Shown here in pieces: positions 2,039 through 47,196 of a DNA stretch of 64,000 nt (position 1 is its first letter; the number at the start of each line of letters is the position of its first letter). Below the pieces are notes generated by a model. It saw nothing but the letters and a program-made list of their open reading frames with translations, was not told the origin of the DNA and did not search any database. Source of the stretch: Oculina patagonica (Eukaryota); NCBI RefSeq assembly GCF_052425735.1, contig NC_135762.1, positions 23,250,001 through 23,314,000 of the forward strand, read 5' to 3'. The position numbers and the translations under genes were made by a program.

Positions 2039-2577
2039 CTAAGGTATCATCGCATTGCTCGTGCAGTTCTTGTACTCAGCGGTTTCGCGCCATGAGCATG
2101 CGGTTCCGTCAGCATTTTTCAAGCAGTAGGAATGACGCCATTCACAGTCGTTGCCTCTAGGGTTCATATATTGAGATAAGCGACACCCTGACAGCTTTGG
2201 GCAGTGATTTCCGTAACACGGTGAAATTTGGCATCCGCAATTTGGCGCATAGAAGCGCCTGACTCCAACTCGCTGGCGCTGAGTGACTTGGGACCACTCT
2301 TCAACCCATGAACTGCATAAATGCAGTCGCAGTTTTGCGTTGATAATTTTTCCGGAGATCAGGTACACCGTGTCATTTGTGAGCCAGTCCACGGCGCAAA
2401 TCCCAGACTCCTTAGGAGTGTAAGCCTTGGCGAATAAACTGCGCTGTCTGGAACCGTAAACTTGAATGCCTTCTGTCTGGTTGAGTTCTGACGCGCCCTT
2501 GTACGTCTTCAGGATTCGCAGACTGATGACGAGTGACTCTCCTTGTATTTCCTGAGACAGGACCTTTGCACGGACAA
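2039..2577 (-). CDS. TIMP: TIMP-A exon 2 (tissue inhibitor of metalloproteinases; spliced protein 215 aa)
   Basis: TTTTCAG acceptor at 2579-2578, phase 1; VVRAKV..KTYKG..AYTP..GICAV..YLISG..LHLC..YAPNCGC..CSW TIMP motifs; TAG stop. Confidence 0.95.
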
Positions 2578-3499
2578 CTGAAAACAGAAGAAATTGAAAG
2601 TTTCTCCTCAGTGAGCAGCTTAAGGGATGGCTTATGCCCAAGACTGGAAGCACAAAAGTTCCCACCCCACCCCACCCCCAAGCGCCCACGATTCTTTCCC
2701 CGGTTCGTTAGTGAGCCTAGCAACACAAGAACGCAAGCACAAAAAACGAACTGTTTTAACCTTTCTGCTTGAACTTGCGTTTTTTGGAACAAATTCCTGT
2801 GTTAGCGCGTGTGATTTCGTTACTAGTTAATCATTCGAATAACGGTAAAAATCTCCCAAGTAAAGTTTTAAAGATGTATGATCAGATAGATGGCAAAGAG
2901 AATTAGGATTTTGATGATAGCACTGAAAATGTTAGCGTGATGTGGTAAAACCAATCTTGAGTAAAGGTCGCAGTGCAGGTTTTTTTATTTTTATTTCTGT
3001 AAAGCGACTGCTTAGATAAAAAAAGGAATGGTAAACATGTAGTCAAACAAAACATGTCTACGCAGAACTGAAACGCCTGTACAGCTGCTGAGCATCCGTT
3101 CCCAAGAGTGATCTACTGGTAATTTCTCCTTAGCAGACAGTACGCTGTCAATCAGACAAGTGATGAGAATACGAAAAAAATCAGTCATAAGAAATCAACT
3201 TGAGTACCACCAAACTGTCACAACTTAACATGAAATGCCCGGGGTACTCTTAATAGAAAGTAGACTATACGGGGGAGGCTCGGCCTGAGAGGAGTGCCTT
3301 TTTCTCAAGTTTAAGGCCGTATATCAAAGAGTAGGGATTTCAAGAATCGAAGGAAATGTTATTTAAGTACTTAAAAGAGGCTTTAAAAATAATGCTGAAC
3401 AGACGCACCTAACGGTTTACGGTTTATTCATCTGAGTATTTTAATGAATTACTGAAGTAAAACGTTTAGAAAAGGGATGCATTATTTCTACTTTAGTTA

Positions 3500-3896
3500 C
3501 CGTATTTTTTCGATTTAGCGCCCTGGGCGCCTTATTAAATTTTTGGACCTTGAGGCTGGGCGCTTATTCGAGGTGGGCGCTTATTAAATTTTCACAATTT
3601 TTAGCAAGTAGTACGTTTACTTTTGCAAGAAAACAATGTATAATAACTAAACGTGAAGATGTAAGAAAGCTGAATTTTTAATGTTCATTGAAAGTTTCAG
3701 TAAAAAAAAACTAAAAAAACTCGGTCTTCGGGATAGTCTCTTAGTAGTACTTAGTCAATTTTAATCTCAACTTCAACAATAATCAAACTTCCTCTTGTGC
3801 CCTCATTATAGGGGGTGGGGGTGGGCGCTTAATCGAGGCTGGGCGCTTATTAACTTTTCCTACCTACAGGGTGGGCGCTTAATCGAATAAATGCGG
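3500..3896. mobile_element. TA-flanked MITE (ccgta TIR, pogo/Tigger-like)
   Basis: ta|ccgtatttttcg ... cgaataaatgcgg|ta; internal gggcgcttat repeats. Confidence 0.75.
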
Positions 3897-3967
3897 TATG
3901 TAAAAGGGCTCCCATTTTCCATGAAAGGCATACCAAAGGGTTACCTTTTTTAGCCAAAAATGATATA

Positions 3968-4280
3968 CCGTAGAATTCCGGTTATAAGCCCTGGGCTTAT
4001 ACAACTTCGTAAGGGGTTTTGGGTCGGCCTATAAGCAGAGGGGCTTATATCCGGGAGGGCTTATAAGCGGAATGAAAAAATCGTTTTGAAAAGTGTCACG
4101 GGAGTGTTGACTGAAATACGTTTTTACTTGAAAACGTAATAAAGCAACATTTAGCCCTATTCAGTACTGTCATCCGGTAGAGGGGGGCTTATATCCGGGG
4201 GGGCTTATAATCGGATGTATTTTTTTGTTTCCAGGTAGATGGGCCTATAACCGGGGGGGCTTATAACCGGAATTTTACGG
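3968..4280. mobile_element. TA-flanked MITE (ccgta TIR)
   Basis: ta|ccgtagaattccggttataagccc ... gggcttataaccggaattttacgg|ta; internal ggggcttata repeats. Confidence 0.85.
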
Positions 4281-6204
4281 TATACAAGGATAAGGGTTTG
4301 TGCCTCAAGGCGGAGCCTCCCCTCCTCTGTATAAAGCTTTGTTGAGTGCCCCCCCCCCCCCCTCCCTTTATATACTTGGGATCTGGCTGGAACTAAACAT
4401 GAAACGGTTCAAAGCAACCTTTGTGTTAGCAAAAAGTTAGACAAACGTCGGTGATGAATGAAAAGAAAACACTGTTTAGACCGCATTCCTGTCTCGGAGA
4501 GTTATGTTGATCTGCGGCTTCGTCGCGCCTAACCCGCTTCGCAAGCTGTAGTTTCTACTTCTCGTGTTACGCAGACATTGCTAGGTCGGCAATTTCACCT
4601 TAGGAGGTTTGAGTTGAAACGGTAATAAAGCGAAAAATCAAGACCAAATTTGGTGTCAAAATTAGATGAAATTGTATGATCAAACTGAAAAAGAAGTCAT
4701 CAAAAAGTTACTCCGCGTAGAACCAATTAACCATTTCCGGGGCGTGTGTGAGTAAAGGAAATTTTTAGAAGACGATAGACCGACCACGCGGGTTTTCTAC
4801 GTGCCCTGGGGAGATAATAGCTGATAAAGTGTGGATCGAAGGATCAAGGCTTTTTCAAAGACAAGCTAAACAAACAAACACATATTTTTCTTTCGTGGCG
4901 TGTCAAAATATGGCCGCAAAACGCTTCTGATCTTTCTCGCCAAATTTCTCGTTCAGGCGATCGAACAGGAAAAAACCGGTCGTCCGTGTACAATGTATTA
5001 AACAAAACTCATGGTCAAATTTGACATTCGTTTTAATTTGAACTGTTTGCGGTCAAGGGAGTACCTCATCGATTCGTGACAGTAATAACAGGATTATGTT
5101 TATGTGTAAAGTGGACAAATATTTAGAGCAATCTAGAAGGCGACCGCAGCTTATAACAGAAACGTAGAGAAGTCGTACGAAAGAATTTTCGTGCGTGCAT
5201 TAATTTTTTTTTATCTTCAGCGAAGCACACATGCATTTTAGACAGGAAGAGTTTCTGAAACCGAGATAAATAATGTTATCGCAACTTCCCTTCGATATAT
5301 GATAACTCATTTAAGCGTTTCGGAGGTCTTTCGAGAAACAAGTCGTACTGCGTTCGACTAAGACTTTTAATAGATCTCAAAAGAAAACAAGTTTTAATTT
5401 CTAATCCATTGCCAAGACAGACTTCTATGATGTGATAATGTTATAAATCTTTTCAAAGCTTTTGTCTGCCAAATCCACCAAATATTTCATTTTACGACAA
5501 AAAAGAGATTTAAATCTAGCCAAAAACAAAAACAACTACAGATAGCGCACATTTTCAACAGGAAAGGTGTTTGAAACCGAGGTGAATGATAATGTGCCAA
5601 CATCCCCGCTAAACACCAGTTACTTTTATAATGAGAATAATTTAATTATTTCTAAGCAATTTTGGCCATACTGCGTCCGACTGCTTCTTTGATCTTTAAA
5701 GAAAACAAGTTTTAATTTCCATCTGTGATCCAGGCATTTAGCTGTGTTGATATAATGTTATACATCTTTTAATTGCTTTTCCTCTGTTAATTCCAGCAAC
5801 GGCGTCTCCCTTTACGATCGAAGCTTAGTCTGGCGAAAAACGCTACAAAAATGATACTTTGTATAAAGTAAGAAGTGTTTCGCTTCCTGCGTTGTGTTGA
5901 TATTTTCTTTTGAGCTGTGTGGGTCTCAAAGTCACTTATTTTGACCCGCCGTGTGATAACTGGAAATAAAAAAGCCAAACAGTGCAAGCTGATGCTAACC
6001 AATGACGCAGTTCGTACTGATCTGAACTGAAACTTTTCGTTTTGAATCCAAAAGTAATTGAACCTGAAGTGTATCGATTTATATCCCTGCTATTGCGCTT
6101 GTCAACATGCAAACTTACAACAATCACTGCACTTCTCAACTCTGCGTGTCAAAGCTACAATTACGTGCAAACAACTTGAGAAAGGGAAGCATTTTACAAC
6201 TCAC

Positions 6205-6313
6205 CAAAATCCGCAGCACAAAAGCCTTCCTGGGGATGAAAAGGCATACACGAGCAAGCTTCGCTTGAAGCCGCAACCGCGAGCAGGAAAGCGACGTTAA
6301 AGAGCAAAGACAT
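6205..6313 (-). CDS. TIMP: TIMP-A exon 1 (signal peptide + CSC N-terminus)
   Basis: MSLLFNVAFLLAVAASSEA-CSCMPFHPQEGFCAADF, then G|GTGAGT donor (phase 1), which joins exon 2 in frame. Confidence 0.95.
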
Positions 6314-8259
6314 CTTTCTATTTACGTTGTCGTATAAAACGTGGATGATCGCGCATTTAACAGAGCGATTGCTGTACGTCAATGCAAAGAGCTAACTCGC
6401 TTGAGCGCTACTTATATGTCAGCACTTTCGAAACGTGATATCCGGTATAACGAAATGGCCATTTGCTCTCGTCTACGTCACTATAATGCGCTTGCAACGA
6501 TAATTACGTAATCATACCGCGCCCTTGTAAAATAAACAGAATTTCCGTTAAAGACCCCCCTGAAAGAAGATAAGATTTGATAATGTAGGAAAAGTAGCGA
6601 AACGGCGACTTCCCGATAGAAGTGATGTCAAAACAATGAGGAAAACAAATATATTACATTTGTATTATGTACATAATATTTGCTTTGTATTAGCTAGTAT
6701 TCAAGTTGGGTTCTTTTCAAAAGTTTTCATTCCAGTTCGAATCATATAAAGGGAAATCCGCACTGGAAGCGGTCACTAGTCAATCACATAAAGCAACAGA
6801 TAAAATTCCGTTTAGTTTTGCGATTGCAATCATGTTTACAACGAACGGTATACGTTAGTAAAAGCTCCCCCGAACAGAAGTGATTCCTCGAAAGTAACCA
6901 CAAAAAAGATCGATTGTTATACAGAACCGAAAGCAAAATCCTCACTATTAATAATTATAGGACCTTTTTAGATTGTTCCCAGCCTTTCTGTTTTCCTAAA
7001 ACAGTTGAGCGTATGTTCTTTAAGCGTTGAGAAAAATGGAGCGGCTATGATTTGGCCTTGACGCTGCAATTCTTTGAGCTTGTCACGCAGTCTTCATAGG
7101 GGAAAGATTGCGTGACGAGTCCAAAAAGCTCCTGCGTACCTCTTGCGTAGGAGGTGACTAGCCTGCGAGCAGAATTCAGAGTTCCTATTTCGATTAGTTT
7201 ACTAGTTTAGACTGAGACAGATATGGGTGTGTCGCTCGAACAAGCTCCACAAGACAGAAGACTCATTTCCCTTCCTACGTCGTCTACGTTACGCTTAGCC
7301 TTCGTACATGTGGTTACTTTGGGGAATCGCTTCTACTCAAGTGTAACCAATCAGATGAGTTTTCATTGCTTCAGTCGTAAACCATGTACAACGAGAGCAG
7401 ATTCTGTTTCAGATTTCTTCTCTTTGTCATTGATGCGCAAAGGAGAAGAGTTCTTGGGTCGAAAAAAAAAAGTTAGCTTTGGAAAATTACTAAAAGGGAG
7501 AAAACTCGAAATCGAAATTTGCGAGAACCAATATGACACACCACCGTGATAAAAGAAAAAGACGCTCATTTGCGGTTAAATCGATCCCTCTAATTTAACA
7601 AGATTTTTACCCACCCCACATGATATTGTTTTGGTTTTGGCAAAAACCTAACTGACGAGTGTGCATAATGTCATGGTGAAGCATGTCTAACCCTCTTTCA
7701 AGCTTTTAAATTGAGTGTAGTTGTCATTACATGGATGATAAAACAATTTGTAAAAGAAATTCCATGTAGCAAATTCGGTGGTGCCAGACGATAACTTGTG
7801 AACCGTTTCCATCCTCGACATCCTCGCTTACAAAATACATTAGGTTCCTTTCTTGTATAGAGAACTGTTCTACACCAGGAGACCTATGGGCTCCTGTCTA
7901 TACTGATCAATTCCAAACCATAATTGATGGGTTTTCAGACGGATCTTAAATGTGTCCAAGTCCAAACTTGAAAACATCCCAAAATTTATTTTGCAAAATA
8001 CTGAAAAACCAACGAAACCACATAAAGCTACTGCTCGTTAGCTTTCATTTTAATGGCCACTTTGTAGTATTTCATCTACAGAATTAAATGTAAAACTATG
8101 TGTACAATAACTGGCTTAAAGTTTGATCGGGGACTGCGATAGACAGTTGATTAAATTATGCCGTAGATAAGTCAGTGTCCCTTGAATTATTTCTAGTCCT
8201 TGTTATTTAACACGAAAATTACAAATCAGCCACATCACCGTTTTTCACATGTATAGTTC

Positions 8260-8789
8260 TTAAGGCATCGCCTTGGTCGTGCAGTTCTTGTACTCAGCGG
8301 TCTCGCGCCACGAGCATGCGGTTCTCTCAGAATTCACAAGGCAGTAGGAATGACGCCATTCGCAGCCGTTTGTGTGGATTCCAGAAGACCGGCCACACCC
8401 CTTGAGCTTTTCACAGTGCTGGATATAGCACGGTGATATCTGGCACTTGCAGTTTTCACCATAGAAGCGTTTGACACCGATGCGTTGCCGCAGCGAAATT
8501 TCAGACCACTCCTGGTTCCAATTGCATAGATTCAGCTGAAGTTTTCCTTTCCAGATGCGCCCAGTAATGAGATACACTTTGTCGTTTTCCAGCGATACGC
8601 CACACAGGGAATGGAATGTAGTAGTGTAAGCCCTGGCCAACAGACTGCGATGTCGGGAGCCGTACACCTGAACACTTCCGGTCTGGTTTAGTCTCCAGGC
8701 TCCTTTGAATGTTTTCAGGATTCGTAGATCGAAGATGCGAGTGAAATTTTTGTCGTTTTCTTGCTGAGAGAGAACCTTTGCACGAACCG
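8260..8789 (-). CDS. TIMP: TIMP-B exon 2 (spliced protein 212 aa)
   Basis: TTTAG acceptor, phase 1; AVRAKV..KTFKG..HSLCGVSL..YLITG..LNLCNW..CKC..CSW. Confidence 0.95.
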
Positions 8790-8915
8790 CTAAACACAGG
8801 AGAGATAAAGAAGATTTCATGGTGAATTACTGTTTTCGTTACTATTATATTTTTTTTTGAAAAGTGATGCACAATTCTATGTCGGTTCTTAATCTTCTAT
8901 TGACCGTTATTATGC

Positions 8916-8971
8916 TAGCCTGCGTTGCAGACGAACAAAACCCCGGTATAGTGCGTCTGCAACGCAGGCTA
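8916..8971. mobile_element. 56-bp micro-MITE with 9-bp TSD (Mutator-like)
   Basis: TIR tagcctgcgttgcagacg / cgtctgcaacgcaggcta; TSD ttattatgc at 8907-8915 and 8972-8980. Confidence 0.85.
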
Positions 8972-9427
8972 TTATTATGCTAAACCCGGATTTTTCCGGC
9001 ATTTGGAGGAATGGCCATTCAACCACTTGTGTCTGCAGAATCTTGTGATGTGCAACTTATAGAGGTTGGATAGATCTTTCCACAGGACGTCTATTTTGAA
9101 TACATATGTATTGACTGCATTCTGACAGAGCTAATCGCAAAAAAACTTGATCACGTTTTGGTGTAAAATTGGTGGTAAAACAGGCCAATATACCCGTACT
9201 CGATCATGGTCTCCTTTTCAGGCTTTTCCATTGATAAGGATCAAAACTTTTCAGGCCAGAAGAAGGGATACACAGATTAGAAGGTAGAGAGAATAATAAA
9301 GCAGAGAAAAACGAAAAGGAAAGGAGCAAGGGAGTTTAAATAAGAACGTAGTCTAATTTGAGATAATTAAGACATTAATTACGCCAGCAAACGTCAACAC
9401 AATGTATTGCGCTAAAAAATAATAATA

Positions 9428-9428
<1 letters not shown>

Positions 9429-9485
<57 letters not shown>
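9429..9485. repeat. (ATT)n microsatellite
   Basis: Pure att run. Confidence 0.95.
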
Positions 9486-9486
<1 letters not shown>

Positions 9487-10159
9487 GGGAAAAATCGAAA
9501 CGATTTCGCAAAAAAAATCAAAATTTTGGCATATGCGCATGCGCATGCGTCAAAGTAAAATATTGCACTTTTTTACATGCAAACTTCATCAAAATCTTAC
9601 CGCAGTGTGAGAAAGTGCATTTCTAGCAAAGTTTAGAGACATTTAGCACCGTAGCGCCCAAAAATCAATTAAACAGTTAAAAAACGTTTGTTTTAGTAAT
9701 TTCAGCATATTAAGAGTTAACCTTAATATGCAACCCAGGAGCAGTTTACAGCTCCTCGGTGAAGTAGCGAACTGTTTTCGGTCGGAATCAATGCTACCTG
9801 GTCGAGAATTCTCGGAGCCTGCCGTATTCGTCAAAAGACGTTGATACACAACATGCCCTGAAGGCGCCTTTTTGAAGGAAGAGTAGCGCAGTAATAAATA
9901 GGCAATGCTCTAAAAATCAGCATGACAGATTTTCAGCTTGTAACAAATTATTGCTTGCCGTTAAAAGAACCACCGAATAATTTTTTCAGGCGCTAGTATC
10001 ATTTCTCATTAGAAAACGTGATTGAGGTTCAAACTCAATACAAAGGATATTGGAACACATTTCAGCTGAGACGCACAAAAGTGGCATGAGCGTGGGCTCA
10101 TTTCCACGGCCGTGATCGGGTACTGAGTTGCACGTGCATGGAAAAACCGGATGTATTTT

Positions 10160-13100
10160 TAACTTTTTTCCGACTAAGTGGCTGAAGTACATGTCCCATG
10201 GTGATAATTGGTTGTGAAGTGGGGATATAAATATTTTGTGTATGAGGATTACCACGTAGAATGAAAAACGATTTCTTTCTGGCAATCTATAAATTGTGGG
10301 ATTTCGATCCAAATTAACGGAATAACATTTTGTCCAGTTAATTCAGAGCTTTTCATTTCAGAACTTCAACTGTATGCAATTTCAAAGGAACGTTTATCGT
10401 CCGTTTTCGTGACACGAGTTTACTAATTACGGGATTAAACTGTGTAAATATTTTCCACAATTACGGCAGTCACTCAGGCAGGAGATACAACGTAGACGAG
10501 AAACAAAGTGCAAACGGTATACGTTTTACCCAGAAGAAAACCCGAAATGGCGATGAAACATGTTGTGCCGATCTGTTTCGACAAGTATAACAATTGTTTC
10601 GTACTTATCGAATCATATTGAGTTTTTAGTGTCTGGGTCGTAGTTCATAGCCGAGCCATACCATGCCACTCTATTGAGCTGGACACTTCTAAATCGTTTT
10701 ACCAAGGAAACAAAATTTAATTTCTAATCTGCATCTAGGTATGTTTTGCATACTAGTGGGTTGCGATAATCTTATCAAATACTTCTGTAAGTGGTTTTAT
10801 TCTTTCCAATGCTGTTAACGTTTTACTTGATGATCGTAAAATGCCAAAAGTTTTAAAAATCATTGAAATTTCCTTGCGCTTCAGCGAGGATTTGCCAAAA
10901 AGCACCATTTGTCTCTCCAACTGATATGCGTAAACTGTATTTCCGCAGCATCTCGGGTTCAGTCCCCCTATTTGGGATGCTTGAGCGCGTGTTAAATTAC
11001 ACGTACGTTGTTAAACCGGATACATGTTTTAACAACATTTTTCCGGCCAAGAGGCTCAAGTACGTGTCCCACGATAATTGGTGGTAAAGTGGGGATAATT
11101 CCAACGATAATGTAAATTAGATTTCCGTACATGAAGAACACCACTTAAAATGCAAAATAGTTTCTTTTTACTATCTGTAAATTGTGGAGTTTCAATTCAA
11201 ATTAACTAGGTCACAATTTGAACAGTTAATCTCGGTGTCTTGAGCAATTAATTTCAGAATTTCAACTTCAAAGAAGCATTTCATCTCCATTTTCGTGACA
11301 CGAATTTTACTAATTACCGAATTTCTCCTTAAGTTTGTAAATATTAAGTAATATGACAATCAAGGGTACTTATTTCGCACGTAAGAAGCCTTCGCCGCTC
11401 GCTTTGCTCGAGTGACCCCACTCGGGAGCCTGTTCGCAGGCTAGAACGTAAGTAACAGAAAGCTCAGAAATGGCATACGAAATGTCCGCGCGTTTTTGCT
11501 TTTCTATTGTCAACAACGAAGCGGGCACCTTCACAGACAAACCCTTAATTAAATAGAAATAAGTCGCTATGTACCAACGCCTCCGCGCATGTAATAGTTT
11601 TTGTTTTGTAGTTATTCAGTGCTAATCACTGCCGAGTGTTTAGGTCGTAGTTCATCGCTGAAGCCATGCCATACCATTCGACGGAGCCGGACTTTGTAAA
11701 AAGAAAACAAATTTGAATTACTAATCCCTCTTTTAGGCATGCCGAGAGTACTGTTCTATTCCGATAATCTTTTGAAATGCTTCTTTTAGTGGTTCTTTTC
11801 TTTCTAATACAGTTAAAGTTCACTTAATCGAAAATCGTAAAAAGGCACTTGCAATATTTTTGTCATAAAATAATGCATCTCTCCAAATACTTTAATTAAG
11901 GAGAACTTGACCAAAAAAGTGTTCTGCAGTTCTCTATTCCTCTTGTTTTGGAGGACTGAGAGCGTGTGATTTTACGGTGAGCAGAGCAAGGGCTTTCATG
12001 TGCCTCAAAAAATTGGATTTATTTTTTTATTGAACCAAACAAGTAGTTTTTTCCGGTCAAGCGGCTTATGGTAAAGTGGCGATATTTTAATTATTAATGC
12101 AAATATTTCCGTGCATTAGGATTTCCACACAAAATGCAAATTAAAATAGTTTCTTTCTAATCCTTCGTCTAGGCATACTGCTGTGTGGCGATAATCTTAT
12201 CAAATGCTTCTTTTATTACGCTTAAATTTGTCTTTCAAATGCAGTAGGCGTTTCACTTTGTGATTGTACAACGCAGAACGTTCATTTGAGTGTTCATTTG
12301 ACCCGAAATAAATAAATACATAGCAAGAAAAGGAGAAGCGCTGGTCGAAATACCAGCTTCTTTACTTTGCGTTGGCAGTTTAGACCTCTAAATAGAAAAA
12401 AGAAAGCAGGCTCTATCAGAGATCTCCTAGTCTCCCTCGCAGCCGTTTTTGGTGTCGTCACGCAAAATTGGGGAGGAATTTTGCGTGACGATCGACGACA
12501 CTAAACACGGCTGCGAGGGAGACTAGAGATCTCCTAGCCACATTATATTTTCTAGTTGATGGTTTTCTAAATTCTCATCACACGTCTGCCTGAAGACGTA
12601 ATGCTATTGTAAGAAGAATTCAAATGTGGATCAATCTTTCCCAGATACGGAACTTGTTCGCCTGATTGACGTGCCTGAACTTGATTTCCGGTTCCCGTCC
12701 TCTTTCGGAGGTTTGATCGCGGGCTCATTTTCCCGCGCACGGCATGAGATGACGCTCGGCGCCAAAGACGGAAAAGTTTAAGCAGAAAATAGCAAGTACA
12801 TTTTCCGTCCAAGCGTCTAAAAAGCGTGTCTAACAGTGATAATGGGTGCTAAAGTGAGGATATTTTCAGCAATAATAAATATTTCCGTTCATGACGATTT
12901 CCACAAAGAATGCAAAACGCTAGGACCCTTCACAATCTATAAATTGTGTGTTTACATGGTTTAAATTTTAAACAGTTGAGTCGCGTTTGCTGGATTGATG
13001 TGCTCTGAGCTTTTAACATCAAAGCTTAAACTTTCCTCAAATTTAAAACGGGCACTTTTCGCCGAATTTGATTGATCAGCGATTCTCAATCAAGGCGGTC

Positions 13101-13400
13101 ACGCAAATTAGCAACAAAGAAAAAGCACAAACAGAAATCTTCGACGAAACGCGCGCGCATTTCAACCAAAAAGTTACCTTGAAAATAAGATGAATCATGA
13201 TTTACCAATCCCCCGCTATAAGTAACAATTGTTTTGTACATAATCTATAATAATGACTTCTTAGTATATGGGTCGTAGTTCATTTTATACCATTCTGTTG
13301 ACGGAGCCGGACTTGTTTTAAAAAGAAAACAAATTTGAATTTCTAATCCTATGTCTAGGCATACTGGTTTCGCTGCGATAATCTGATAAAATACTTCTTT
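10160..13400. repeat. Degenerate tandem segmental repeat in the TIMP-B intron (3 near-full copies + 1 partial)
   Basis: Recurring blocks gtggggata..atgaggattaccac..atctataaattgtgg and ggtcgtagttcat..gagccggact..aaagaaaacaaatttgaatt.ctaatcc..gcgataatct at ~10160, 11035, 12045 and 12805. Confidence 0.7.
12428..12525. mobile_element. 98-bp MITE with 9-bp TSD (Mutator-like)
   Basis: TIR tagtctccctcgcagccg / cggctgcgagggagacta; TSD gagatctcc at 12419-12427 and 12526-12534. Confidence 0.85.
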
Positions 13401-14354
13401 TATTGAACTATTTTATTTATTTATATATAAAAGAACGTGTGTTTTGGGAGCCGTTCGTCTGAAATGCGTTCTTAAAGTTTAGAGGATTTGAGTCTGAAAA
13501 TGTTGTTGAAGTGTTTTGTGTGAGTGTTTTTTTTAATTTCGAAAACAAGGTGGCATTGTAGCAAACCGTTCCGAAACGGATTTAAATTGTACATGTACAC
13601 GTCCAGTTTACTGTAAGATGATAATTTTTTTGGCTCCAGGCTGAATTTTGAACAAAGGCTGAAATCTTACTAAACAAGTATCTATCACCTCACAACAAAC
13701 ATTTTAAAGAAAGTTCTTATCGAAAACTTCAAACTTAGGAGATACGTTAGGAGCATGTTCTTATTATTTAAGCCTTGCTCGGCCTCAACGCTCCAATAAA
13801 AATGAATTGCCATAAAGAATGTAGATGGCGTTTCACATTCGAAGTTTGAGTTTCAGAATATGGCGAAAGAACTTTACAAGAAATATTCCTTTTGTCTCCT
13901 TGGCAATTTCTCGTGAGACGCACTCGTGTGGCCTGAGCAAGTTGAGCAGAGTGTAATAGTAAAATGAATGCTCCAGATTTCGCAGTTATCAATAGTTACT
14001 ACATTTTAGTTTGAATAGAGACTTTAAAATAAGGTCTGTAACAGATATCGGAATGAAAACGGTGTAGATAACTGCTTTCGATTTAGTTTAGTTTGGAGCT
14101 TATCGACAACGAAAAGAATAAGACATCATGTCTTTTATACACGTTCGACGCCCTTAAAACAACTTCCAAAACGATGTAAAACTGTTAAATCGCGGTAGTT
14201 CGAAACATATTTCTCTCTTCTAGACTCCTCTTAGGATTTCTCAGACTGTAAAGCTTATCAACATAAAACCGACTACGAGTTCTCCACTGAGACATATGCC
14301 TGCCAAGCTATTTGAACAGATCCTTTCTGAAAAGAGCCGTCCAATTTAACTTAC

Positions 14355-14463
14355 CAAAATGCGCTTGACAGAAAACTTCCTGGGGATGTCTCTCAAGGCA
14401 CGAGCACGCCTCGCTTGAAGCCACGACTCCCAGCAATATAACAACAAGAAACACTCGGGACAT
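14355..14463 (-). CDS. TIMP: TIMP-B exon 1
   Basis: MSRVFLVVILLGVVASSEA-CSCLERHPQEVFCQAHF, G|GTAAGT donor, phase 1; TATA-like gctatataag at 14551-14560 on the - strand. Confidence 0.95.
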
Positions 14464-16354
14464 CTTTGTTGCTTCGCAGTATTTTTTGGCTCTCAAACGT
14501 CCTACGATCGCGCACTCAAGATTGTAAAGACCGATTGCTGTGTCTCGCTGCTTATATAGCAACCCATGCCAGCGTGAAGCCAGCTGAGTTTAAAGCTTGA
14601 AATCGGACCGGCCGAGCAGCTCCGGCTCTTGGCGCCCGCCACGCTGGGCCGCGCCGCGCCGCGCCGCGCCGCGCCCTTCAAAAATAAAAACGCGAGTTAA
14701 CAGCAATTTACGATTACCTGAGAGCATTACACGGATTCAGAAAAGAAACATTGCATTTAAAGAAGGAGAAAAGTGGGGAAAAAGATCCAAAAGAGTTTAA
14801 TTTGTTGATGACGAGATTCAACGGGGTCCTCCATCGTGTTAAAGAGGTGTGCCCATGCGGCAAACATGTTCCTTCAAACCTTATAACACACCCTTCATAA
14901 CACACACATATAGTAATTATAATTATAGTAATAACGAAAATATTTTGATTGGGTTTATGGGATTTTCCGGTTTTTTCCACCCTAGATATATATTCTTTAA
15001 AGAATAAAATCCTCTTTTATTAAGGAGATTTTAATTATAATTGAGGAAATCCGTTAATTGTTGACCAAATCGCGTTAAATAGGCATCATTACTTGCATAA
15101 TTGCTAAAGGTTCTGTGTCGATTTGCATTACGGATAACTGGGAGTTACTCGAGCAATAGCTTTAAACAGGGTCCCTATTAAGCAAAGGTATCAAAAACAA
15201 CACATCAGTCCCTATAACGATCTAAAGAAACAAATGATAGCTGTTCAACGTACTTCTTTAGCAAAAGACTAAAATGTTACACAATGTCTAGTTTGTGAAT
15301 TGAAAAACGGACAAACTGTGAAAAAGTCTAGACAAAATATTAAAAAGTTTACCGCAGTGTATATAAGTCGAGACAACGATTAAAACAACATTACACCCAT
15401 AAGTTCTGTAGAAGTTGACTAATTGTTTACGCTGGAAAATATTCGGAAAAATAGACATGGCTTTTAGTAACATGATCATGTCGTGTGGCTAAAAGTATAT
15501 ATTGCAAAAAGCGGTAAAAATAGCAGTTACTTTATTGGCTGTTTATTTCGACTTATTTCACAACAACAGCTTTACAAAATTAACAAAATAATACGTATTT
15601 TAAGTCAGAAACCAAAGGGTGACATGAAATCTTTTCTTCATTTTTGCCTGAAGATGCGACAGCTTAAATAATGGTATCGACTGTTTTTTAAGTCTGCCAA
15701 GACGACTCGCATAATTGTAAAAAGCCTGCTAAATTTCATACATATAATAGATGATATTCGAATGGCTTAAACTAGACCAGAGGCTCTGTTTTGCGTGTGA
15801 AAGTATTAAAAGCATTGTAAGAATTAATAATTTGTGATGGTTGAAACAAATTTTTCAGTTAGGCATTTAAAACACGAGAATGGTTGTTCCAAAATTAACA
15901 GTGAAGACTGTATTTTTCATACGTTTTAGCACTATTTTTCTCATTATCTCTTCGATGTCTCATGCTATCGATTACCAGGTTTTGAGTGGAAGGTGCCGCA
16001 AATGTTTATTTTTTTTAAGACTTATAAGTTGCGTTTGAAGTAGTAAAAAGGGAGGTATTAGGGGATTTAAAATAAATAGGGAAAATGAAGATTTTAATAG
16101 AAGAACACCAAAATTAATAGACTACTACTTCGTGCTGAAGTGATCTATTTGATAGCGTGTGTCCCTAAGCTTCTTTTTCATAAAAATTCACGTCGATTCA
16201 AATGTGACATTACCCTTTCGTTATGCATAGCAAATCGCAAGATCTCGCTTACGTGAATAAGATAGAAAAGCTGACAACAACCAGAAAATGCAAATGCTGC
16301 CTACTTGGCAAGTTTATTCATCGTTTTACTTGGTAAACACATTACAAATTCCTT

Positions 16355-16905
16355 TTAAGGCAATCCCGGGTTCATGCAGTTCTTGTAGGCAGCGGTTTCG
16401 TGCCAGGAGCATGCGGTTGCCTCGCTGTTTTTCAAACAGTAAGAATAAAGCCATTCACAACCGTGATAAAACTCGTGCAGCTCGTATTGATATACGTTGC
16501 ATCCTTTGAGCAGCTGATCACAGCCGGGTATCCCGAAGCAAGGCGTGATCTGGCACTGACAATTTTGGGCATAAATCCCGCGGATTCCTGCGCGCTGTGC
16601 CAAAGTGACTTTTGGCCACGGTTGTATCCAACTGCCTGAATTCAGCTGAATTTTCTCCATCTTAATGCTGCCAGCGAGGAGGTACTTGATGCTGCTTTTA
16701 AGCGCCACTGCAACAGTGTAGGCTTTTGCGAAGAAACCAATTTCACCGTTGGCGGTAAAGTTTTCACCGTTGGCTCTAATGTCTTCGGTGCGATTATGAA
16801 GCTTGTCCCTTCCTTTGTAGACTTTCAGGATTTTTAGATCGTACACGCGGTTGAGTTTGTACCCTTCCGTTGTTTGATTCCCTGGCAGGACTATGGCGCG
16901 AACCG
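16355..16905 (-). CDS. TIMP: TIMP-C exon 2 (atypical TIMP lacking C70 and C99 equivalents; spliced protein 228 aa)
   Basis: TTCTTAG acceptor, phase 1; AVRAIV..KVYKG..AKAYTVAVAL..YLLAG..LNSGSW..CQC..CSW; C-domain cysteines intact. Confidence 0.9.
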
Positions 16906-17059
16906 CTAAGAACAAAAAAGAAACAGTTTTAGCCGCTTATAGTACGCTCAACAAAATTACTGGATTCTGTTTGGATGAGAGCAGTACAATTAATCCCAAT
17001 TTGTGCTTCCTACGACTACTTTTAATTCTTTAAATTCAAGTTAGAGCTACGAAGTCATT

Positions 17060-17220
17060 CAAAGATTTTCGAAGTTGACCGTTGACTGCTGAGAAGTAAA
17101 CCCGACTTCTTCCGAAGATTTTCGAAGTCGACCCGAATTCTTCTGAAGATTTCCGAAGTTGACCCGAAGACTTACGAAGTTGAATAAAAGTTTTCCCGAA
17201 AATTTCCGATGTTGGCCCTT
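17060..17220. repeat. Degenerate ~30-bp minisatellite
   Basis: Repeated gaagattttcgaagt(t/c)gaccc units. Confidence 0.6.
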
Positions 17221-17678
17221 AAACCTCCGGGAAGCGGTTAAAACAGTGATTCAGAACCGTTTTGCTCGCACTCCGGATTCAATTGGAGTTGTTTTGCTTG
17301 TTGCTTTAGGTATTTTAGCTTACGTTTAGGTGAATATCTCGTTGAATGTATAGAAACAAATTAGATTCCATTTGGCTCTCCACTCTTGTGATTCACAGAA
17401 AAGTTTGATGTCATCTGTGTGGATGTATGGGCTAGCCATGTTGGGGAAATGAGCCCGTGATCGTGTCGGGCTGTATTTTCTCGTGAAGGAGGGAAGACCG
17501 GTGCGAGAGAACAGTGCGGAAATCGAATCGTGTTGTTGAAATCAATCGTTTCCGGCCTGTCTTGGGTGTCGAAATCTCCCACTTCCGTAATTCGCATGTA
17601 GTAAGTTTCTTATCACTCACAAGAATGTCAATAAGACTAGCCCCTGATGAAACGAACTGAATTGCAATGAGTAAAATA

Positions 17679-18147
17679 CCTTATTACATGAAATTTTCGC
17701 GACACGTTAATTTCGCGATTTTGCGAAAATTTTGTATTTTAAATCACTTTAATTTTGCGTTTTTGAGTAAGACACAATTTACATTTCCTTTAAAAAGGAC
17801 TTCATTTTTGAAAAAATAAAGTCAAAATAAACAAAAAAGCAAGGGTGGGACTAAATCTCGGCAATAGCTACAACAGAGCAGTTAATGTCTACAAGTAGGT
17901 TATGCTTGTAAGTGCATGAGTCATTGTTCTTGTTTCAATTGACGACAACATACATTTAGATTTATAATTCCTTCCTTCAGTGGCACTAAACTTATTTGTC
18001 TTATTTATTGACATAATGTGAGTCACTTAATTTTCGCGTCATGTAATGTTCGCGACACTTATTGTTCGCGTCACTTTAATTTCGCGATTTTTTTCGAATC
18101 GCGAAATTCGCGAAATTAACGTGTCGCGAAAATTTCATGTAATAAGG
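17679..18147. mobile_element. TA-flanked MITE with ~40-bp perfect TIRs
   Basis: ta|ccttattacatgaaattttcgcgacacgttaatttcgcga ... tcgcgaaattaacgtgtcgcgaaaatttcatgtaataagg|ta. Confidence 0.9.
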
Positions 18148-18410
18148 TAGCAACGAAGGAATAAATGAAAGAGCGCAGAGCTTGAAGATATTCCTCATAG
18201 AGTTGTTCCCTGCGATATGTCGTCTTCCTATTCACGCACCCCTCGTTAATCCGATCATGTTTACAAGCAGAGGTCATGCATATTCAAACTGATGTTACCG
18301 TTTGTGCTCTTCGTTGCTTTTTGAGAAAAGTACATCGTTTTCGCAGACAACAGTTTTTATCAGCGAGTATCTTGTGAAATTGCGTCAAGACAAAATATTT
18401 TCTGACTCAC

Positions 18411-18546
18411 CAAAATCTGCCAAACAGAACCGTTCTTGCGGATGCCTCAAGTAGTATGCCTTTTCACTGCGGGCCTCTTCATCGGTAGTATACGCCATAG
18501 TCACAGCACTGAACAGAACAGCAACACAACAGATAATCGAATTCAT
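18411..18546 (-). CDS. TIMP: TIMP-C exon 1 (signal peptide, no CxC motif); not in the ORF track
   Basis: Hand translation: MNSIICCVAVLFSAVTMAYTTDEEARSEKAYYLRHPQERFCLADF, then G|GTGAGT donor, phase 1; HPQ.xFC.ADF matches the other paralogs. Confidence 0.9.
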
Positions 18547-30800: not shown

Positions 30801-33800
30801 TATATTACCTCGCCGGCTTCATCAGAAGAAATTTGCGTAGGTAAAAGCATTAAGGACCATTAAGGAGTTCCGAGCCAAAGAACGTAGTCATTACGCAATT
30901 TTGTAGTTTTGGAGCACTCCTGCTGTGTCGAGCATCAGGCCATCAACAGCAAAAGCATGCAGAGAAGCGACCCACGTTTTACCAAAAGCTGCTCACTATG
31001 AAAAGAATTGGGTGGGATCGGTAACATTCTCTGTTAGAACTACAGCGAACCTCCCTTTGACAAGATGTTATTTTAGCCTGTATTGTTAAATTGACTTCTT
31101 ATGTTTTCAGTTAACATGTTGTCATAATATTTTTAATCTGGCTATATTACGTCTTTCTTTATCATTGTGGAACGTATTATTGTGATTCGCTGTTAAATTA
31201 TACAATGTATGAAGGACTTTACTTTATAACTTTGTAATTCATTTGGAGATATTCACCTCAGTAGAGTAATATAATTTAAAATATTAAACGGCAAATGTTC
31301 ACTGTGATAGCAGACCAAATAACCTTAGAAATTCCACATTGTGTGAATCCCCAACAAACATGCATGACTCGACTGGCATGCAAAACAATAATATTTAAGG
31401 AATGAATTCTATCCAGTTGGAACTCCTTGTCGAAAGAAATCATTTATGCGATTGGATAAGCATTTGAGTAATCTCCCACCATTCTGAGCAAGATTTTGTT
31501 TTGTATATATTACCAACTTATTTGTTTAGAAACTGTGGTTTGAAATTTACAATGGTCATCCCCACCTTATACGAATCACATATTTCGATTTGATTTTTTT
31601 TAATAAAATATATAACGCCAAAGAGGAATTTGAGAAATTGATACCAACGAGATATTATACCTGATTTGCATTAAAACTTATATTGGTAATTTCAATTAAG
31701 GAACACTGCTATATTTGCGGAATATTTTTAGGTGCAAGCATTTCCTGTGGTGGAATTTTGCATTGATCGTGTAAAAAGTCCCAAACATTCATTTAATCGG
31801 CCACAAAATTTCGTGCCATGTTTACTTGCAACTAATCCCAAAGAAATTCAATTGACAAAATGCCGGACGTTTTAAAGATTGTGTTATGGCATGTTGATGG
31901 AACTTGCAAAAGAACCCATTAAAATATTCCAAATGTCAATCAACCAACATGGCAGTGATGACGTCATATGCAACCAACAATTTAGCACTTTCGACAAAAA
32001 CTGCGTTACCATGTTTGCAGATAGCCACAGACTTATCCATAGAGTCGAGTTCTATCATTGGTTTAAGGTTTTTTTTTTCTTTAAATAAACTAAATTAAAT
32101 TAAACTTCCCCGTGATTTTGTTGAGAAAAATTTTTCCGTAACGACCACAAAATCCCCACGTTTATAAGAAACGGCAAAAATATTGGAAAAATAACAAGAA
32201 TGTCATGATATGAGTTCGAAATAAATTGCGGAGGTTTTGTAAAAATGAAAACTAATATAGCATGCCCTTAACCCTTAACTAGCATCTTTTCCCAAGGCTA
32301 ATATTTTAATTGAATTCTCGTTTCGATTTAATTTGGTGCATATTTTCGGCCCTAATTCTCTGCTTTAAGCGATAGCGTGCTTAATTATCCTGCAGTGCCT
32401 GCTTTTAGTTGTCGTGACGACGTAAAGAGATTGTAAGATCGTGAGATTACAGCTCGGTTAAAGGACGAATACGCGCTTCTTTCACAGAATTAAATTAAGC
32501 GCACTGAATCAGCGTAATTTTACGAACATGTTCTCCGCGTGACTCGCTGTGTTGTCATGTATAAGGTCATCACGTTCGCTGCGGTTAAGGTTCAGAAGTC
32601 TCTAGATAGTCGCCTAAGTGTACGCAATTAGGTGTATTTAACTTCGCCTACTCTTGCAATATACTCTGCAGTACTTAACTTTTATATTGTCATCGCGGTG
32701 AAGCAGAGCTTTGTGAGCGATGCTGTGAAGAGAAATTAAAACTGCATCTCGAACAATTTCCTTTTCGCGCTTTTAAAGCTAGAAAAGGAACATAAAAGAA
32801 CCCACACACTTCTCAAAATTAGGGACGAAGCCCACGTTGTAGTCTGTTTGCCATTGTGCCTTATGTGAAATGCTGGAGAATTAGCAGTAAAAGCACTCAC
32901 AATCCGAGGGAAAAAGTATCACTTCACTCAGAAAACGAACAATTCTCTCTCAAATAACAATTGCTTGCAAATGAAGTGTAGAGATATCATTTAGTAATGT
33001 TGAACAGTTCGAGACTGCAAAGGAAGAGGTCGGATATGAAAACTTGGTCAACTTTCTAAGCCAGAATATTCTTCATAATAAATAAAAAGAAAATTCGAGA
33101 ATCTATTTGTATTTTTATTTGGTGGCGCACCTGTAAACTAGGTTTTTAGCTAAGCGAGCTGACCACGTTAATAAACTATTTAAGATTGATTGATTATCAG
33201 ATCTGCTGCCGATCGTTATTTGTCAAAGTTTTGATTTACTGGATGCTAGAAATACGATGAGCGCGGGGAGCGATGGGAGAGATTTGCTCTCCGTATTCGT
33301 TTCTTCTCATCGTAGCTCGCGCGCCCTGCATCTCTCCACAATGTTTGTGTACAACTTTGACACAAACTTAGTTAATATTTAGATTTTGTATTTACAAAAT
33401 GCCAGCATGTGTGGGCTAACGTAGATTGATAGGGTAAATTTAAAATAACTCTGAGTTAGGAATTTTTCTAACTTTTATAGAGTGAACAACTGAACATCTC
33501 TTTTCGAATTTAAACTGGCTTGGTCCTTAACCGATTCAAAGTAAATGAATTGGAAATGTTCAAACCTGGGATTATGTTGCATTTTTAAGTTCCTTTTTAC
33601 TTGCATTCTTAATTGAATTATGCCGCCCAAGTTGCCGCAAATTTGGCGACAATAACTTCTTGAGTTAAGGCTCTTTTTGGAATAAAAAGCTCGAAAATAT
33701 CGAGTTCCTATTGTCTTACCAATAATCTTACAGAGCATAAGTCGTTAATGGAATAATTAATTGTAAGTACTGTTTTTAGAATAGTGTAAGATTCCGAAAA

Positions 33801-35167
33801 ATGAAACCTAGTGACTAAGCCGACTATTGCACCTATTTTTTACATAGGTTCCAGTGGGAACAAAAACATCACCAGATCGTAGAAAATCCCAACAATAATA
33901 TCTTAATTTTATAAAACAGTTTTTCACGAATCAAAGGAAACTGAACCACTGCATGGATTAGTTTAGCCAGGTCTTCATTGGTATTTCATTGCCAAATTCT
34001 TTTTGCAACATGGAATTCTTAAAGCAGAGCTGAGATTGCAGTCTATATTTCGCAATCACAATCGAAACTTTTGTAGATGACTACCCGGTTTAACTTACAT
34101 CACATGGTTGCACAAGAGAAATTCCAGAGTTTAACGTGGCTCTCGTGAGAGAGTGGGAGGTTTAGCAACTGTAGTTTTTACAGTGTCGCAGTATTCCGTA
34201 AGTTGAAGGAACATTTTTCTCTCCCGTTTTGCACAAATTTGATGCAGTTCTTACTTTTTCAACTTTCACAATCTTGTCACAGAGATTATCCGTCTTAAGT
34301 TAATCCATGTAATCGAAGATAACTGTTTGCGCAAAATCCCCGCAAATCTTCTTTCAATTCACAAGAAGTTCATTGCTAAATCTGCAACTACTGAGGCAAT
34401 CCACTAATACAGTGCTGTTAGACTTAGAAGATCAATGGTTCGCGCATGCAACCTGTCCCAAAATTGGATTATGACGTAAATTAAATGAAACGCCCGATCG
34501 CAGGTTAACCAGCCCTGGGACTCTGAAACCCTTACGCTATATACCAGACCATGTTTTGCAACATTTTGCAACCCTGTTCTAGGCTAGACACTAAAAATCA
34601 CTACTGCATCTCAGGGTCTTTTTCTCTATCACTATCGCAGGAACTCGTTTCCAGGTGTCAATTCTTAGTCCAGACTGAATTGTTTATACCACTGATCATT
34701 TTCTCGGGAAATTGATGCCCCACATTGTGGACCAAAACTCTCTTATTTCTGTATTACATCCAGTTAAAACTGCTTGAAAACCATACCCTTCACAGCGGCC
34801 CATAACCATATACGGTAGCTTAGATTATAGTTATAGTTTGGTGTTTTTTTTTTTTTTATGGGAGTACCCCACCCCACCCCCTGACAGGGCTTTAAGCCTT
34901 TGCTAGCTAAACCACAGGAAACGTTGCTTAGTGTAACACCGCCATAACTTTCCAATATGGTTTTCATGTAACTATCTCAAAACTTTCTTAATTTTCCTTA
35001 TCTGTCTTCCCAAATTGCAAGGTGTATCGTTGTTTGTAAGGAGAAATTAGCTGTGAAGCACGCTTGGGAAGTAAAGAATAACTGAATCTTTGAAGTTTGA
35101 ACTTATTTATAAGATAGTATCAATAAACTGCATGTTTTATATTTCTTGTTTTACTTTCTTCTTGCAG

Positions 35168-35230
35168 TTAATCACCCCGAAGTTTCCTGTTGTTGTTAAG
35201 GTCGGCCATGCAAACGGAGGGTACGGCAAG
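35168..35230 (+). CDS. SYN: Synapsin exon (equivalent to human SYN1 exon 6)
   Basis: ttgcag|LITPKFPVVVKVGHANGGYGK|gtaagg; matches synapsin domain C YPVVVKMGHAHSGMGK; 63 nt, phase 0-0. Confidence 0.93.
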
Positions 35231-43750: not shown

Positions 43751-43893
43751 GTTTGTGTACACAATCACCGCAGTTTCCAGGATATCGCGAGTATTGTAGC
43801 TCTCTCGGACACTTATGCTACAACAGAGCCGTTCATTCCTGGAAAATGCGACATCAGGATTCAGAAAATTGGCACCCACTACCGAGCATTCAA
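43751..43893 (+). CDS. SYN: Synapsin exon (equivalent to SYN1 exon 7)
   Basis: ttttag|[47 protein letters not shown](K)|gtac; phase 0-2. Confidence 0.97.
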
Positions 43894-44264: not shown

Positions 44265-44339
44265 GCGAACGTCCATTTCCGACAATTGGAAAACTAACAC
44301 GGGCTCGGCGGTACTTGAGGAGATAGCTATCAATGACAG
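44265..44339 (+). CDS. SYN: Synapsin exon (equivalent to SYN1 exon 8)
   Basis: tatag|[24 protein letters not shown](R)|gtat; NWKTNTGSA synapsin signature; phase 2-2. Confidence 0.97.
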
Positions 44340-44412: not shown

Positions 44413-44518
44413 GTATAAAAAGTGGGTTGACGAATGCAGTCATTTGTTTGGAGGCGGTCTTGACATCATGTGTGTGGAAGCGATCGTTGGGAAAGACAAC
44501 AAAGAATATATCATTGAG
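44413..44518 (+). CDS. SYN: Synapsin exon (equivalent to SYN1 exon 9)
   Basis: ctccag|YKKWVDECSHLFGGGLDIMCVEAIVGKDNKEYIIE|gtaa; phase 2-0. Confidence 0.97.
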
Positions 44519-45282: not shown

Positions 45283-45424
45283 GTGAATGACACAGCCATG
45301 AGACTTTTCAGTGACACACAAGATGAAGACCAGAAGAGAATTGCTGACCTAGTGATTGAAAGAATGGAGAAGCAGTATCCACCGACCCTCGAACCCAGTA
45401 CCGCTACAGGCGCGGCGCTTACAG
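45283..45424 (+). CDS. SYN: Synapsin exon (equivalent to SYN1 exon 10)
   Basis: ccgtcag|VNDTAMRLFSDTQDEDQKRIADLVIERMEKQYPPTLEPSTATGAALT, G|gtga; end of domain C; phase 0-1. Confidence 0.93.
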
Positions 45425-45472
45425 GTGACTTAACATTGCCGTGATGAATACCTAAATTACATAAGACATTTA

Positions 45473-45950: not shown

Positions 45951-46277
45951 GCCGAAGCCGGAGAAAAGTGGCGCCGAATTGTTCCCGAGGAGAAAGCGTG
46001 ACCTAAGTGTGCGAACAGCGGTCTTTTCGGGCCACGGACTCGCTTTCACAGGTCACGCATTCCCCTTCGCTAAAATGCCTAATAATTATGCCATGAATAA
46101 ATTCAAATGTTTTTGAAGAATGACTAATCAAAACAGAGCATTCCTCGGCTGTCTTAACAGCCCCTTATGTTTTTCTTACTTCTTTTAACGAAAGTGTATA
46201 TGATGCGTTGTAAAATAACAATCTTTACTCTTTCTATTTCTTACCTATGCCTTCCTCTGTCTTTCTCTATCTGTCAG

Positions 46278-46301
46278 CTGAACCGGTCAGTGAAGGTAGC
46301 G
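46278..46301 (+). CDS. SYN: Candidate 24-nt synapsin microexon
   Basis: ~55-nt polypyrimidine tract plus cag, then G|GTAAGT donor; phase 1-1, adds AEPVSEGS in frame. Confidence 0.55.
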
Positions 46302-46356
46302 GTAAGTAGCCGGGTGAGAGCCTACTTTCTTTCTTTTTCTCTGACACCTTGTTTTG

Positions 46357-46653
46357 ATTATGTTTATTAGTGAACTGGACTCACTACGCTCAGGTATGTG
46401 CACTTTGCTCATCTCCAGACTGAGGTAACACACCAGCCTAGCAGTGGACAGCTGTTTAGTCCTCTTTGGGACTCGTCAGCACAGCGTAAGGCATTGTGGT
46501 AATGGGAGAAAAGTTCTTATTTCTCCCACCTCAGTGATCCAACACTTGTGGTACACAAGGTGGATCTCTGGTGTACCTCAGGTGTACCTCAGTCTGGAGA
46601 TGAGCAAAGTGCACATACCTGAGCGTAGTAGTCAGTTCACTAATAAACATAAT
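46357..46653. mobile_element. Palindromic element with ~75-bp inverted arms
   Basis: attatgtttattagtgaactg..ctacgctcaggtatgtgcactttgctcatctccagactgaggt and its reverse complement at the right end. Confidence 0.75.
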
Positions 46654-47089
46654 TATTTGTGTGTCTCAGGGTTACACTATATACGTGTGTATATGTGTAT
46701 GTACAAGTGCTTACCTTGTTTTGTATGTACACACGATGAACACTTCTTACAGCTGAACTATATAACCACTGATATACATGGCAGATTGTCTCTGGCACTT
46801 TCTCAGCTGCACTTTCACTTTTCTCTGTCTATTTTATTTCATCTTGTAGAGGAATTTCTTCTTTAATATCTTTGTTTGTTATATAACGTGCACTGTGTTT
46901 AGATGGCAAGGAAACACGACTTGTAACACGTCGTTGCATAAAAACCGTTCTATATAAGGCGAAGTCAAAAATACTCATGGTTCGTCTCGCAAGAGAGAAC
47001 ACTACTCTTGCAACCGTGTTCTTTTTATGTGTGTGTGTGTTGCGTAAACGTTTTTAACTATTAACACATAAATCGCTGTTCATTTGCAG

Positions 47090-47196
47090 GTGCTTTTAAA
47101 GTCATGGGGGGTCCCGGCGCGCCAACAGCCTCTGAAGGGGCAACGAAGTCGCCGGAGAAAAAGAAAAATGGAATTTTTAGTGGATTTATCGATTAG
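47090..47196 (+). CDS. SYN: Synapsin terminal coding exon (domain-E-like C-terminus)
   Basis: ttgcag|GAFKVMGGPGAPTASEGATKSPEKKKNGIFSGFID*; phase 1 matches; the end resembles the domain E RKSFASLFSD*. Confidence 0.75.

Follow-up and report, generated by a model that had tools for sequence, protein, structure and literature searches.

Do the four TIMP genes that stand ahead of the 3' exons of a synapsin gene in the stony coral Oculina patagonica lie within an intron of that gene, on its opposite strand, and how did there come to be four of them? The locus lies in a stretch of 64,000 nucleotides (assembly GCF_052425735.1, contig NC_135762.1, positions 23,250,001 to 23,314,000 of the forward strand), which we call the window and to which all O. 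patagonica positions below refer; its G+C content is about 39% and it contains no runs of N. We present evidence that the four genes, designated TIMP-A to TIMP-D, almost certainly occupy a single synapsin intron of more than 35 kb, and that they arose, most simply, by multiplication within that intron on the coral stem.

Four TIMP Genes on the Minus Strand

A six-frame scan of the window revealed four minus-strand pairs of open frames with TIMP hallmarks. The short frame of each pair encodes a hydrophobic leader and then an HPQ..FC...F segment, with CSC present in A, B, and D; the long frame, which starts V/A-V/I-R-A-K/I-V-L, follows downstream on that strand after 1.5 to 5.6 kb. The short frames end with F and then a donor, and the position of the AG ahead of each long frame lets the split codon be read as V or A. 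All four genes have two exons and a phase-1 intron, with donors G^GTGAGT or G^GTAAGT (^ marks a boundary here and below) and AG acceptors; the signal peptide and the N-terminal stretch as far as ..C...F come from exon 1, the remaining protein from exon 2. Family membership was assessed with the Pfam TIMP profile (PF00965, cut-off 23.1 bits), which the four second exons match with E values of 5.8e-22 to 1.1e-24 (78.8-87.7 bits). The genes and their exons are as follows.

6313..6205 + 2577..2039, minus strand: TIMP-A, 215 amino acids
6205..6313, minus strand: TIMP-A exon 1; signal peptide, CSC, HPQ..FC...F; donor G^GTGAGT
2039..2577, minus strand: TIMP-A exon 2 and stop; Pfam TIMP E 2.6e-23; AG acceptor, split codon G+TT
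14463..14355 + 8789..8260, minus strand: TIMP-B, 212 amino acids
14355..14463, minus strand: TIMP-B exon 1; signal peptide, CSC; donor G^GTAAGT
8260..8789, minus strand: TIMP-B exon 2 and stop; Pfam TIMP E 1.1e-24
18546..18411 + 16905..16355, minus strand: TIMP-C, 228 amino acids
18411..18546, minus strand: TIMP-C exon 1; without Cys-X-Cys; sequence AYYLRHPQERFC
16355..16905, minus strand: TIMP-C exon 2 and stop; Pfam TIMP E 5.8e-22
27827..27716 + 24327..23738, minus strand: TIMP-D, 233 amino acids
27716..27827, minus strand: TIMP-D exon 1; signal peptide, CSC
23738..24327, minus strand: TIMP-D exon 2 and stop; Pfam TIMP E 4.2e-24

The splices predicted for O. patagonica are supported by orthologous transcripts and canonical splice sites. 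The splice junction of TIMP-D is that of an Orbicella faveolata protein (P0002; ..CNSAF^VIRAKV), and its exon 2 is 93% identical to a protein in ENA (P0001) and 90% identical to "metalloproteinase inhibitor 4-like [Orbicella faveolata]"; the whole TIMP-B protein shares 79% identity with a transcript-derived protein (P0012). Among themselves the four proteins are 32-60% identical, which marks the array as diverged rather than recent. No further TIMP fragments were found in the window. A preliminary description of this DNA had placed four minus-strand TIMP genes before a plus-strand synapsin exon, and both the Pfam matches and the gene models bear it out; the positions it gave for the stop of TIMP-A (2039) and the ATG of TIMP-D (27827) are exact. 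Within the TIMP-B intron, a long AAT/ATT-type trinucleotide run (9416-9549) reads as poly-N, poly-I, or poly-L frames.

A Synapsin Intron Longer Than 35 kb

The window encodes the 3' half of synapsin in six plus-strand exons, from 35168 to 47196, with AG at all acceptors and GT at all internal donors; synapsin is thus on the plus strand and all four TIMPs are on the minus strand. Two features define the position of the array.

1..35167, plus strand: host intron, portion within the window; flanked by exon 6 and by an exon 5 that the window does not include
35168..35230, plus strand: synapsin exon 6; peptide LITPKFPVVVKVGHANGGYGK; flanks cttgcag^ and ^gtaagg; Synapsin_C profile positions 45-70

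Upstream synapsin exons were sought by tblastn against all 64 kb, with two Nematostella queries at E values up to 10 and word size 2 (P0017 and P0020, the latter a transcript contig without genomic context) and with eight anthozoan synapsins, the Porites protein P0168 among them, at E values up to 0.001. Residues 1-200 gave no match anywhere in the window with either set of queries, and no 5' exon was found between 27827 and 35168. The window has no coding sequence for the N-terminal domain PF02078 (Synapsin) or for Synapsin_C positions 1-44; 30 letters of the preceding exon were read from RNA. An exact-sequence look-up returned no record for the synapsins P0017 (a Nematostella isoform), P0170 (Acropora), or P0171 (Montipora).

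The RNA evidence consists of Logan contigs from four probable RNA runs (X1, X2, X3, and X5), placed on 29501-35500. Contigs of all four runs cover exon 6, the coverage in X1 and X3 being 35167-35232, and since depth is zero over nearly all of 29.5-35.1 kb, bar a few short repeats, the runs are not DNA-contaminated. Upstream of 35167, X1 (a 715-nucleotide contig) and X3 continue as ..CAGGCGTACTATCC(T/A)AATTACAAGGAAAT, a loose end also given as ..CAGGCGTACTATCCTAATTACAAGGAAAT. Translated with the next G, this loose end gives QAYYPNYKEM, the residues with which exon 5 closes in every coral synapsin aligned; behind 35232, X1 continues into the first part of exon 7. A search of the window for the exon-5 27-mer, allowing up to 3 mismatches, found nothing. 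The RNA thus joins 35168 to an exon located somewhere other than in the preceding 35 kb. The data therefore strongly support a length of more than 35 kb for the intron between the ..YYPNYKEM exon and the LITPKF.. exon, as the preliminary description had concluded on finding no earlier synapsin exon, and they support as strongly that this intron carries, antisense to synapsin, four or more independent TIMP transcription units. Exon 5, ending ..FPLVEQAYYPNYKEM, would lie on the plus strand to the left of base 1.

The Same Intron in Other Anthozoans

The host intron had been proposed to be orthologous to that of other animals, and the comparison with other anthozoans agrees: the boundary ..KEM^LITP.. 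is identical in the window, Porites lutea, and Nematostella, and it hosts TIMPs in all three. In P. lutea (GCA_958299795.1, OY283132.1) the annotated synapsin gene spans 58 kb, of which 47.8 kb separate exon 5 (..YYPNYKEM) from exon 6 (LITPKF..). Annotated in this intron, and antisense to synapsin throughout, are five TIMP genes and a single Dynamin_N/Pkinase gene. On re-reading, the five annotated TIMPs resolve into four clean two-exon units, T2b (for which only a second exon was found), and a T3-derived fragment. The intron, the strand relation, and the gene order near exon 6 are the same as in the window; T5 corresponds to window TIMP-D (75% identity) and T4 to window TIMP-C (47% identity), the Cys-less state included. 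The Dynamin_N/Pkinase gene and a Harbinger-type transposase distinguish the Porites intron, neither being found in the visible part of the O. patagonica intron. The transposase lies within the T3 intron, and the Dynamin_N/Pkinase gene is itself nested antisense. In the same locus (L002: 17160-17486, 20454-20600, 29458-30678, and 50817-55793), one annotated "TIMP" of 293 amino acids seems to be a fusion of the T3-derived fragment with a separate T1-like copy.

Three other anthozoans carry a single nested copy. An antisense TIMP follows directly after the exon ending at residue 201 in the old Nematostella assembly (L008, 8018-8592 + 11624-11732); here we could re-verify on genomic sequence that the TIMP lies in the intron after the ..PNHKEM exon and has the same two-exon, phase-1 structure. 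One TIMP in an intron of about 4-9 kb in Nematostella contrasts with at least four diverged copies in more than 35 kb in Oculina. The octocoral Dendronephthya gigantea has one two-exon antisense TIMP inside the synapsin gene range (L006, 10342-10929 + 14326-14436), and Actinia tenebrosa has one annotated antisense TIMP in its 18-kb synapsin gene, placed within the gene range. The Dendronephthya and Nematostella genes have no gene call in the records, though their two-exon frames are intact. All nested TIMP genes that we examined have two exons and a phase-1 intron after ..C...F/Y.

Two further coral loci were inspected. On a third coral contig (L007), a D-type gene is followed downstream by a C-type first exon, in the same order as in the window. 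The Orbicella locus (L003) has no synapsin exon within 10 kb upstream of the TIMP-D orthologue and ends 4.3 kb beyond that gene, and is thus uninformative on nesting.

Loss of Framework Cysteines in TIMP-C

TIMP-A, TIMP-B, and TIMP-D have ..A^CSC.. directly after the hydrophobic leader, and their mature proteins contain 14 cysteines, in columns common to the Porites, anemone, and octocoral TIMPs. TIMP-C has AYY at the CSC position and is without four framework cysteines, namely C1, C3, and their partners. All four losses are common to TIMP-C and its P. lutea orthologue T4 (L002, 35290-37800), and in a partial orthologue without exon 1 (P0013) the two of these positions that fall within its sequence are likewise lost. 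The cysteines were therefore lost early, before robust and complex corals split, and the gene has been kept intact since. TIMP-C also appears to be expressed, judging from word shares in two probable RNA runs, X3 and X15, in which a fraction of 0.91 of the sampled 31-mers of its exon 2 was found.

Cys1 is the zinc-binding residue of inhibitory TIMPs, as established from TIMP-MMP complexes such as 1UEA. With the Cys-X-Cys after the leader and every framework cysteine retained, TIMP-A, TIMP-B, and TIMP-D are predicted to be secreted and to inhibit metzincin proteases through the N-terminal Cys1. Inhibition of the Cys1 type is improbable for TIMP-C, in which both N-terminal cysteines are missing along with the two cysteines that would pair with them. 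The solved structures nearest to TIMP-D are human TIMP-3 (3CKI) and TIMP-1.

Nesting and Probable Multiplication in Place

A maximum-likelihood tree was built from the TIMP proteins of these loci and from transcript-derived coral TIMPs, and was rooted on the octocoral copy; the sample comprised 18 scleractinian TIMPs and three non-coral nested TIMPs (two from anemones and one from the octocoral). All 18 scleractinian proteins form one clade against the other three (support 98/98), and the two anemone TIMPs group together (95/88). Within the corals, window TIMP-D groups with Orbicella, Porites T5, and others (99/96), TIMP-C with Porites T4 and P0013 (100/100), and TIMP-B with P0012 (100/100); the tree does not resolve TIMP-A, Porites T3, P0011, and the Porites T1/T2b pair. 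Window and Porites agree in gene order: nearest to synapsin exon 6 stands D/T5, next C/T4, and beyond it the A/B/T3 type. The D/T5 and C/T4 clades and this shared order indicate that the D and C lineages, at the least, are older than the divergence of robust and complex corals.

Both the nesting and its history have to be weighed against other readings. The array might merely be adjacent to a synapsin gene that is 5'-truncated or internally promoted, or the assembly might be misjoined. It suits such a reading that the 35 kb upstream of 35168 hold no exon for residues 1-200. Two features of the evidence also weigh against nesting: the RNA contigs come from runs with up to three organism labels and show 1-3 mismatches over exon 6, and some may derive from close relatives; and, with the sequence left of base 1 outside the window, it is the RNA joins and the synteny of four other anthozoans that argue for an unbroken intron. 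Yet the RNA contigs connect exon 6 to exon-5 coding sequence, exon 6 itself begins, at 35168, behind a regular AG acceptor and lacks the context of a start codon, and the window is free of N runs. The same intron, moreover, carries TIMPs in P. lutea and Nematostella, and Actinia and Dendronephthya hold one within the synapsin gene. We consider mere adjacency very improbable, and nesting of the TIMP array in the synapsin intron of the O. patagonica genome close to certain.

For the origin of the array, the simplest explanation suggested by the sequences is that the TIMPs multiplied in place on the coral stem. The preliminary description had likewise proposed expansion in place into a diverged array; the coral clade and the 32-60% identities agree with it, and an older origin is left standing by an approximately unbiased (AU) test, which did not reject a tree joining the D-type copies with the anemone TIMPs (p = 0.128). 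That result counts against a wholly coral expansion, part of which could predate corals, as does the composition of the sample, which consists of nested loci and coral transcripts, so that some array members may have a non-nested origin. Taken further, the AU result would allow a multi-copy array older than Scleractinia, with several types in the hexacoral ancestor and only a D-like copy kept by anemones. A longer loop after VIRAKV, common to the D-type, anemone, and octocoral copies and missing from A, B, C, and T1, points the same way, but the best tree unites all coral TIMPs, and the two anemones and the octocoral have exactly one copy each; we hold this older array to be unlikely. Slightly less likely again is independent expansion in robust and complex corals by parallel duplication or gene conversion. 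It would account for the failure of A, B, and Porites T3 to resolve into one-to-one pairs, and Porites does contain recent duplicates (T1 and T2b) and a partial copy of T3 (T2a); against it stand the strongly supported D/T5 and C/T4 orthologue clades, their common order relative to synapsin exon 6, and the loss of the same four cysteines in window TIMP-C and Porites T4.

The nesting itself would go back to the ancestor that cnidarians share with bilaterians, in line with published work; under multiplication in place, a single ancestral copy would have been duplicated within the intron in the coral lineage before the robust/complex split. TIMP-D, which adjoins the downstream synapsin exon, would be the most conservative copy. 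Further TIMP copies are probably present to the left of base 1, an idea already raised in the preliminary description that fits the lack of any counterpart in the window for the Porites T1-type copies. More tentatively, the order-conserved cluster, with a D-like inhibitor beside exon 6 and then a C/T4 paralogue whose protease-inhibiting N-terminus was exchanged for another function, may have been kept since before the robust/complex split, in which case the intron would be a constrained regulatory neighbourhood and not a passive location; we think this rather doubtful.

The Synapsin 3' Half and Neighbouring Features

The remaining synapsin exons in the window are as follows.

43751..43893, plus strand: synapsin exon 7; Synapsin_C E 2.8e-16; RNA join to exon 6
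44265..44339, plus strand: synapsin exon 8; tblastn; AG/GT sites
44413..44518, plus strand: synapsin exon 9; Synapsin_C E 4.6e-11; AG/GT sites
45283..45424, plus strand: synapsin exon 10; tblastn to coral synapsins; AG/GT sites
47090..47196, plus strand: synapsin last coding exon and stop; tblastn; protein end ..KKKNGIFSGFID

Exons 6, 7, and 9 match the Synapsin_C (ATP-grasp) profile PF02750 over positions 45-174. The spliced frame encodes 211 amino acids and is 93% identical to residues 205-423 of a coral synapsin (P0173), with one 8-residue gap. Related coral synapsins have eight additional residues (e.g., ADTASDGS) between the exons at 45283-45424 and 47090-47196, which suggests a 24-nucleotide microexon or an alternative isoform; a search of 45425-47089 for such a microexon yielded no convincing candidate. 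Against coral synapsins the synapsin exons show 86-100% identity, against those of Nematostella and Actinia 81-83%. From its matches, the source organism is a scleractinian coral, apparently of the robust clade, in keeping with the "probable cnidarian" of the preliminary description; a bilaterian origin was rejected, the best matches being all scleractinian. Very likely the window carries the 3' part of the only synapsin locus of this scleractinian.

The 8.5-kb synapsin intron 6 contains inverted copies of about 580 bp (40779-41358 and 42229-42808), with near-identical translated frames on opposite strands, and between them a P-loop helicase-like frame (41910-42155; ..TGEGGTGKSF..). The inverted pair and the helicase-like frame together look like a terminal inverted repeat element. 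Downstream of synapsin are three Lys/Ser/Glu-rich open frames, at 51998-52885 (plus strand), 54130-54861 (minus strand), and 57186-59351 (plus strand), of 296, 244, and 722 amino acids, respectively. A Pfam scan covering the two plus-strand frames gave no match. The three frames may be exons of unannotated neighbouring genes.

Comparison with Known Synapsin-TIMP Loci

The nesting of TIMP genes in synapsin genes has a substantial literature. Conservation of the arrangement between Drosophila and human was established by Pohar et al. (1999, Genomics 57:293), as cited in a later study (Candiani et al. 2010, BMC Evol Biol 10:32, PMC2825198). The latter described a nested synapsin-TIMP pair in Nematostella, found the nested location conserved across the species that it analysed, and concluded that the arrangement originated early in metazoans. 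The preliminary description adds that in human, too, the host intron precedes the exon LITPKF..; for bilaterians the conserved position is taken here from that study. The claim in the preliminary description that nesting predates the cnidarian-bilaterian split agrees with that conclusion and, having been published in 2010, is not new. Its further statement that each host holds one TIMP is correct for vertebrates and Drosophila and leaves out the two nested TIMPs of Ciona intestinalis and the ten of Strongylocentrotus purpuratus (PMC2825198). A 2016 survey of cnidarian TIMPs (PMC4860685) reported seven in the transcriptome of Acropora millepora and left nesting in other metazoans still to be examined.

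Multiplication within the intron is thus a known variation, and the coral array is visible in the public annotation of P. lutea; our full-text literature search on TIMP, synapsin, and coral found no description of it. With O. patagonica, stony corals join the animals that keep TIMP within synapsin, and the accepted view of the locus is unchanged. Because D-type and C-type copies are common to robust and complex corals, the coral expansion can be dated against a deep split. Corals thereby offer a usable system in which to ask what has kept the two genes nested over so long a time, and TIMP-C provides a natural test of the role of a TIMP after loss of the inhibitory cysteines.

The O. patagonica locus resembles the vertebrate pairs SYN1/TIMP1, SYN2/TIMP4, and SYN3/TIMP3 and the Drosophila pair Syn/Timp in having TIMP antisense within a synapsin intron. 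It differs from them in copy number, there being one TIMP per host in those animals, and in gene structure, the vertebrate TIMPs being encoded by five exons (PMC2825198) and those of Oculina by two. The closer parallel is with Strongylocentrotus and Ciona, whose loci are known to us here from PMC2825198 and in which, likewise, antisense TIMPs multiplied within one synapsin intron in a lineage-specific manner. The coral case would be the third such independent multiplication, after those of sea urchin and Ciona; it took place in another phylum, and among its members is a conserved paralogue that lacks the N-terminal cysteines of inhibitory TIMPs.

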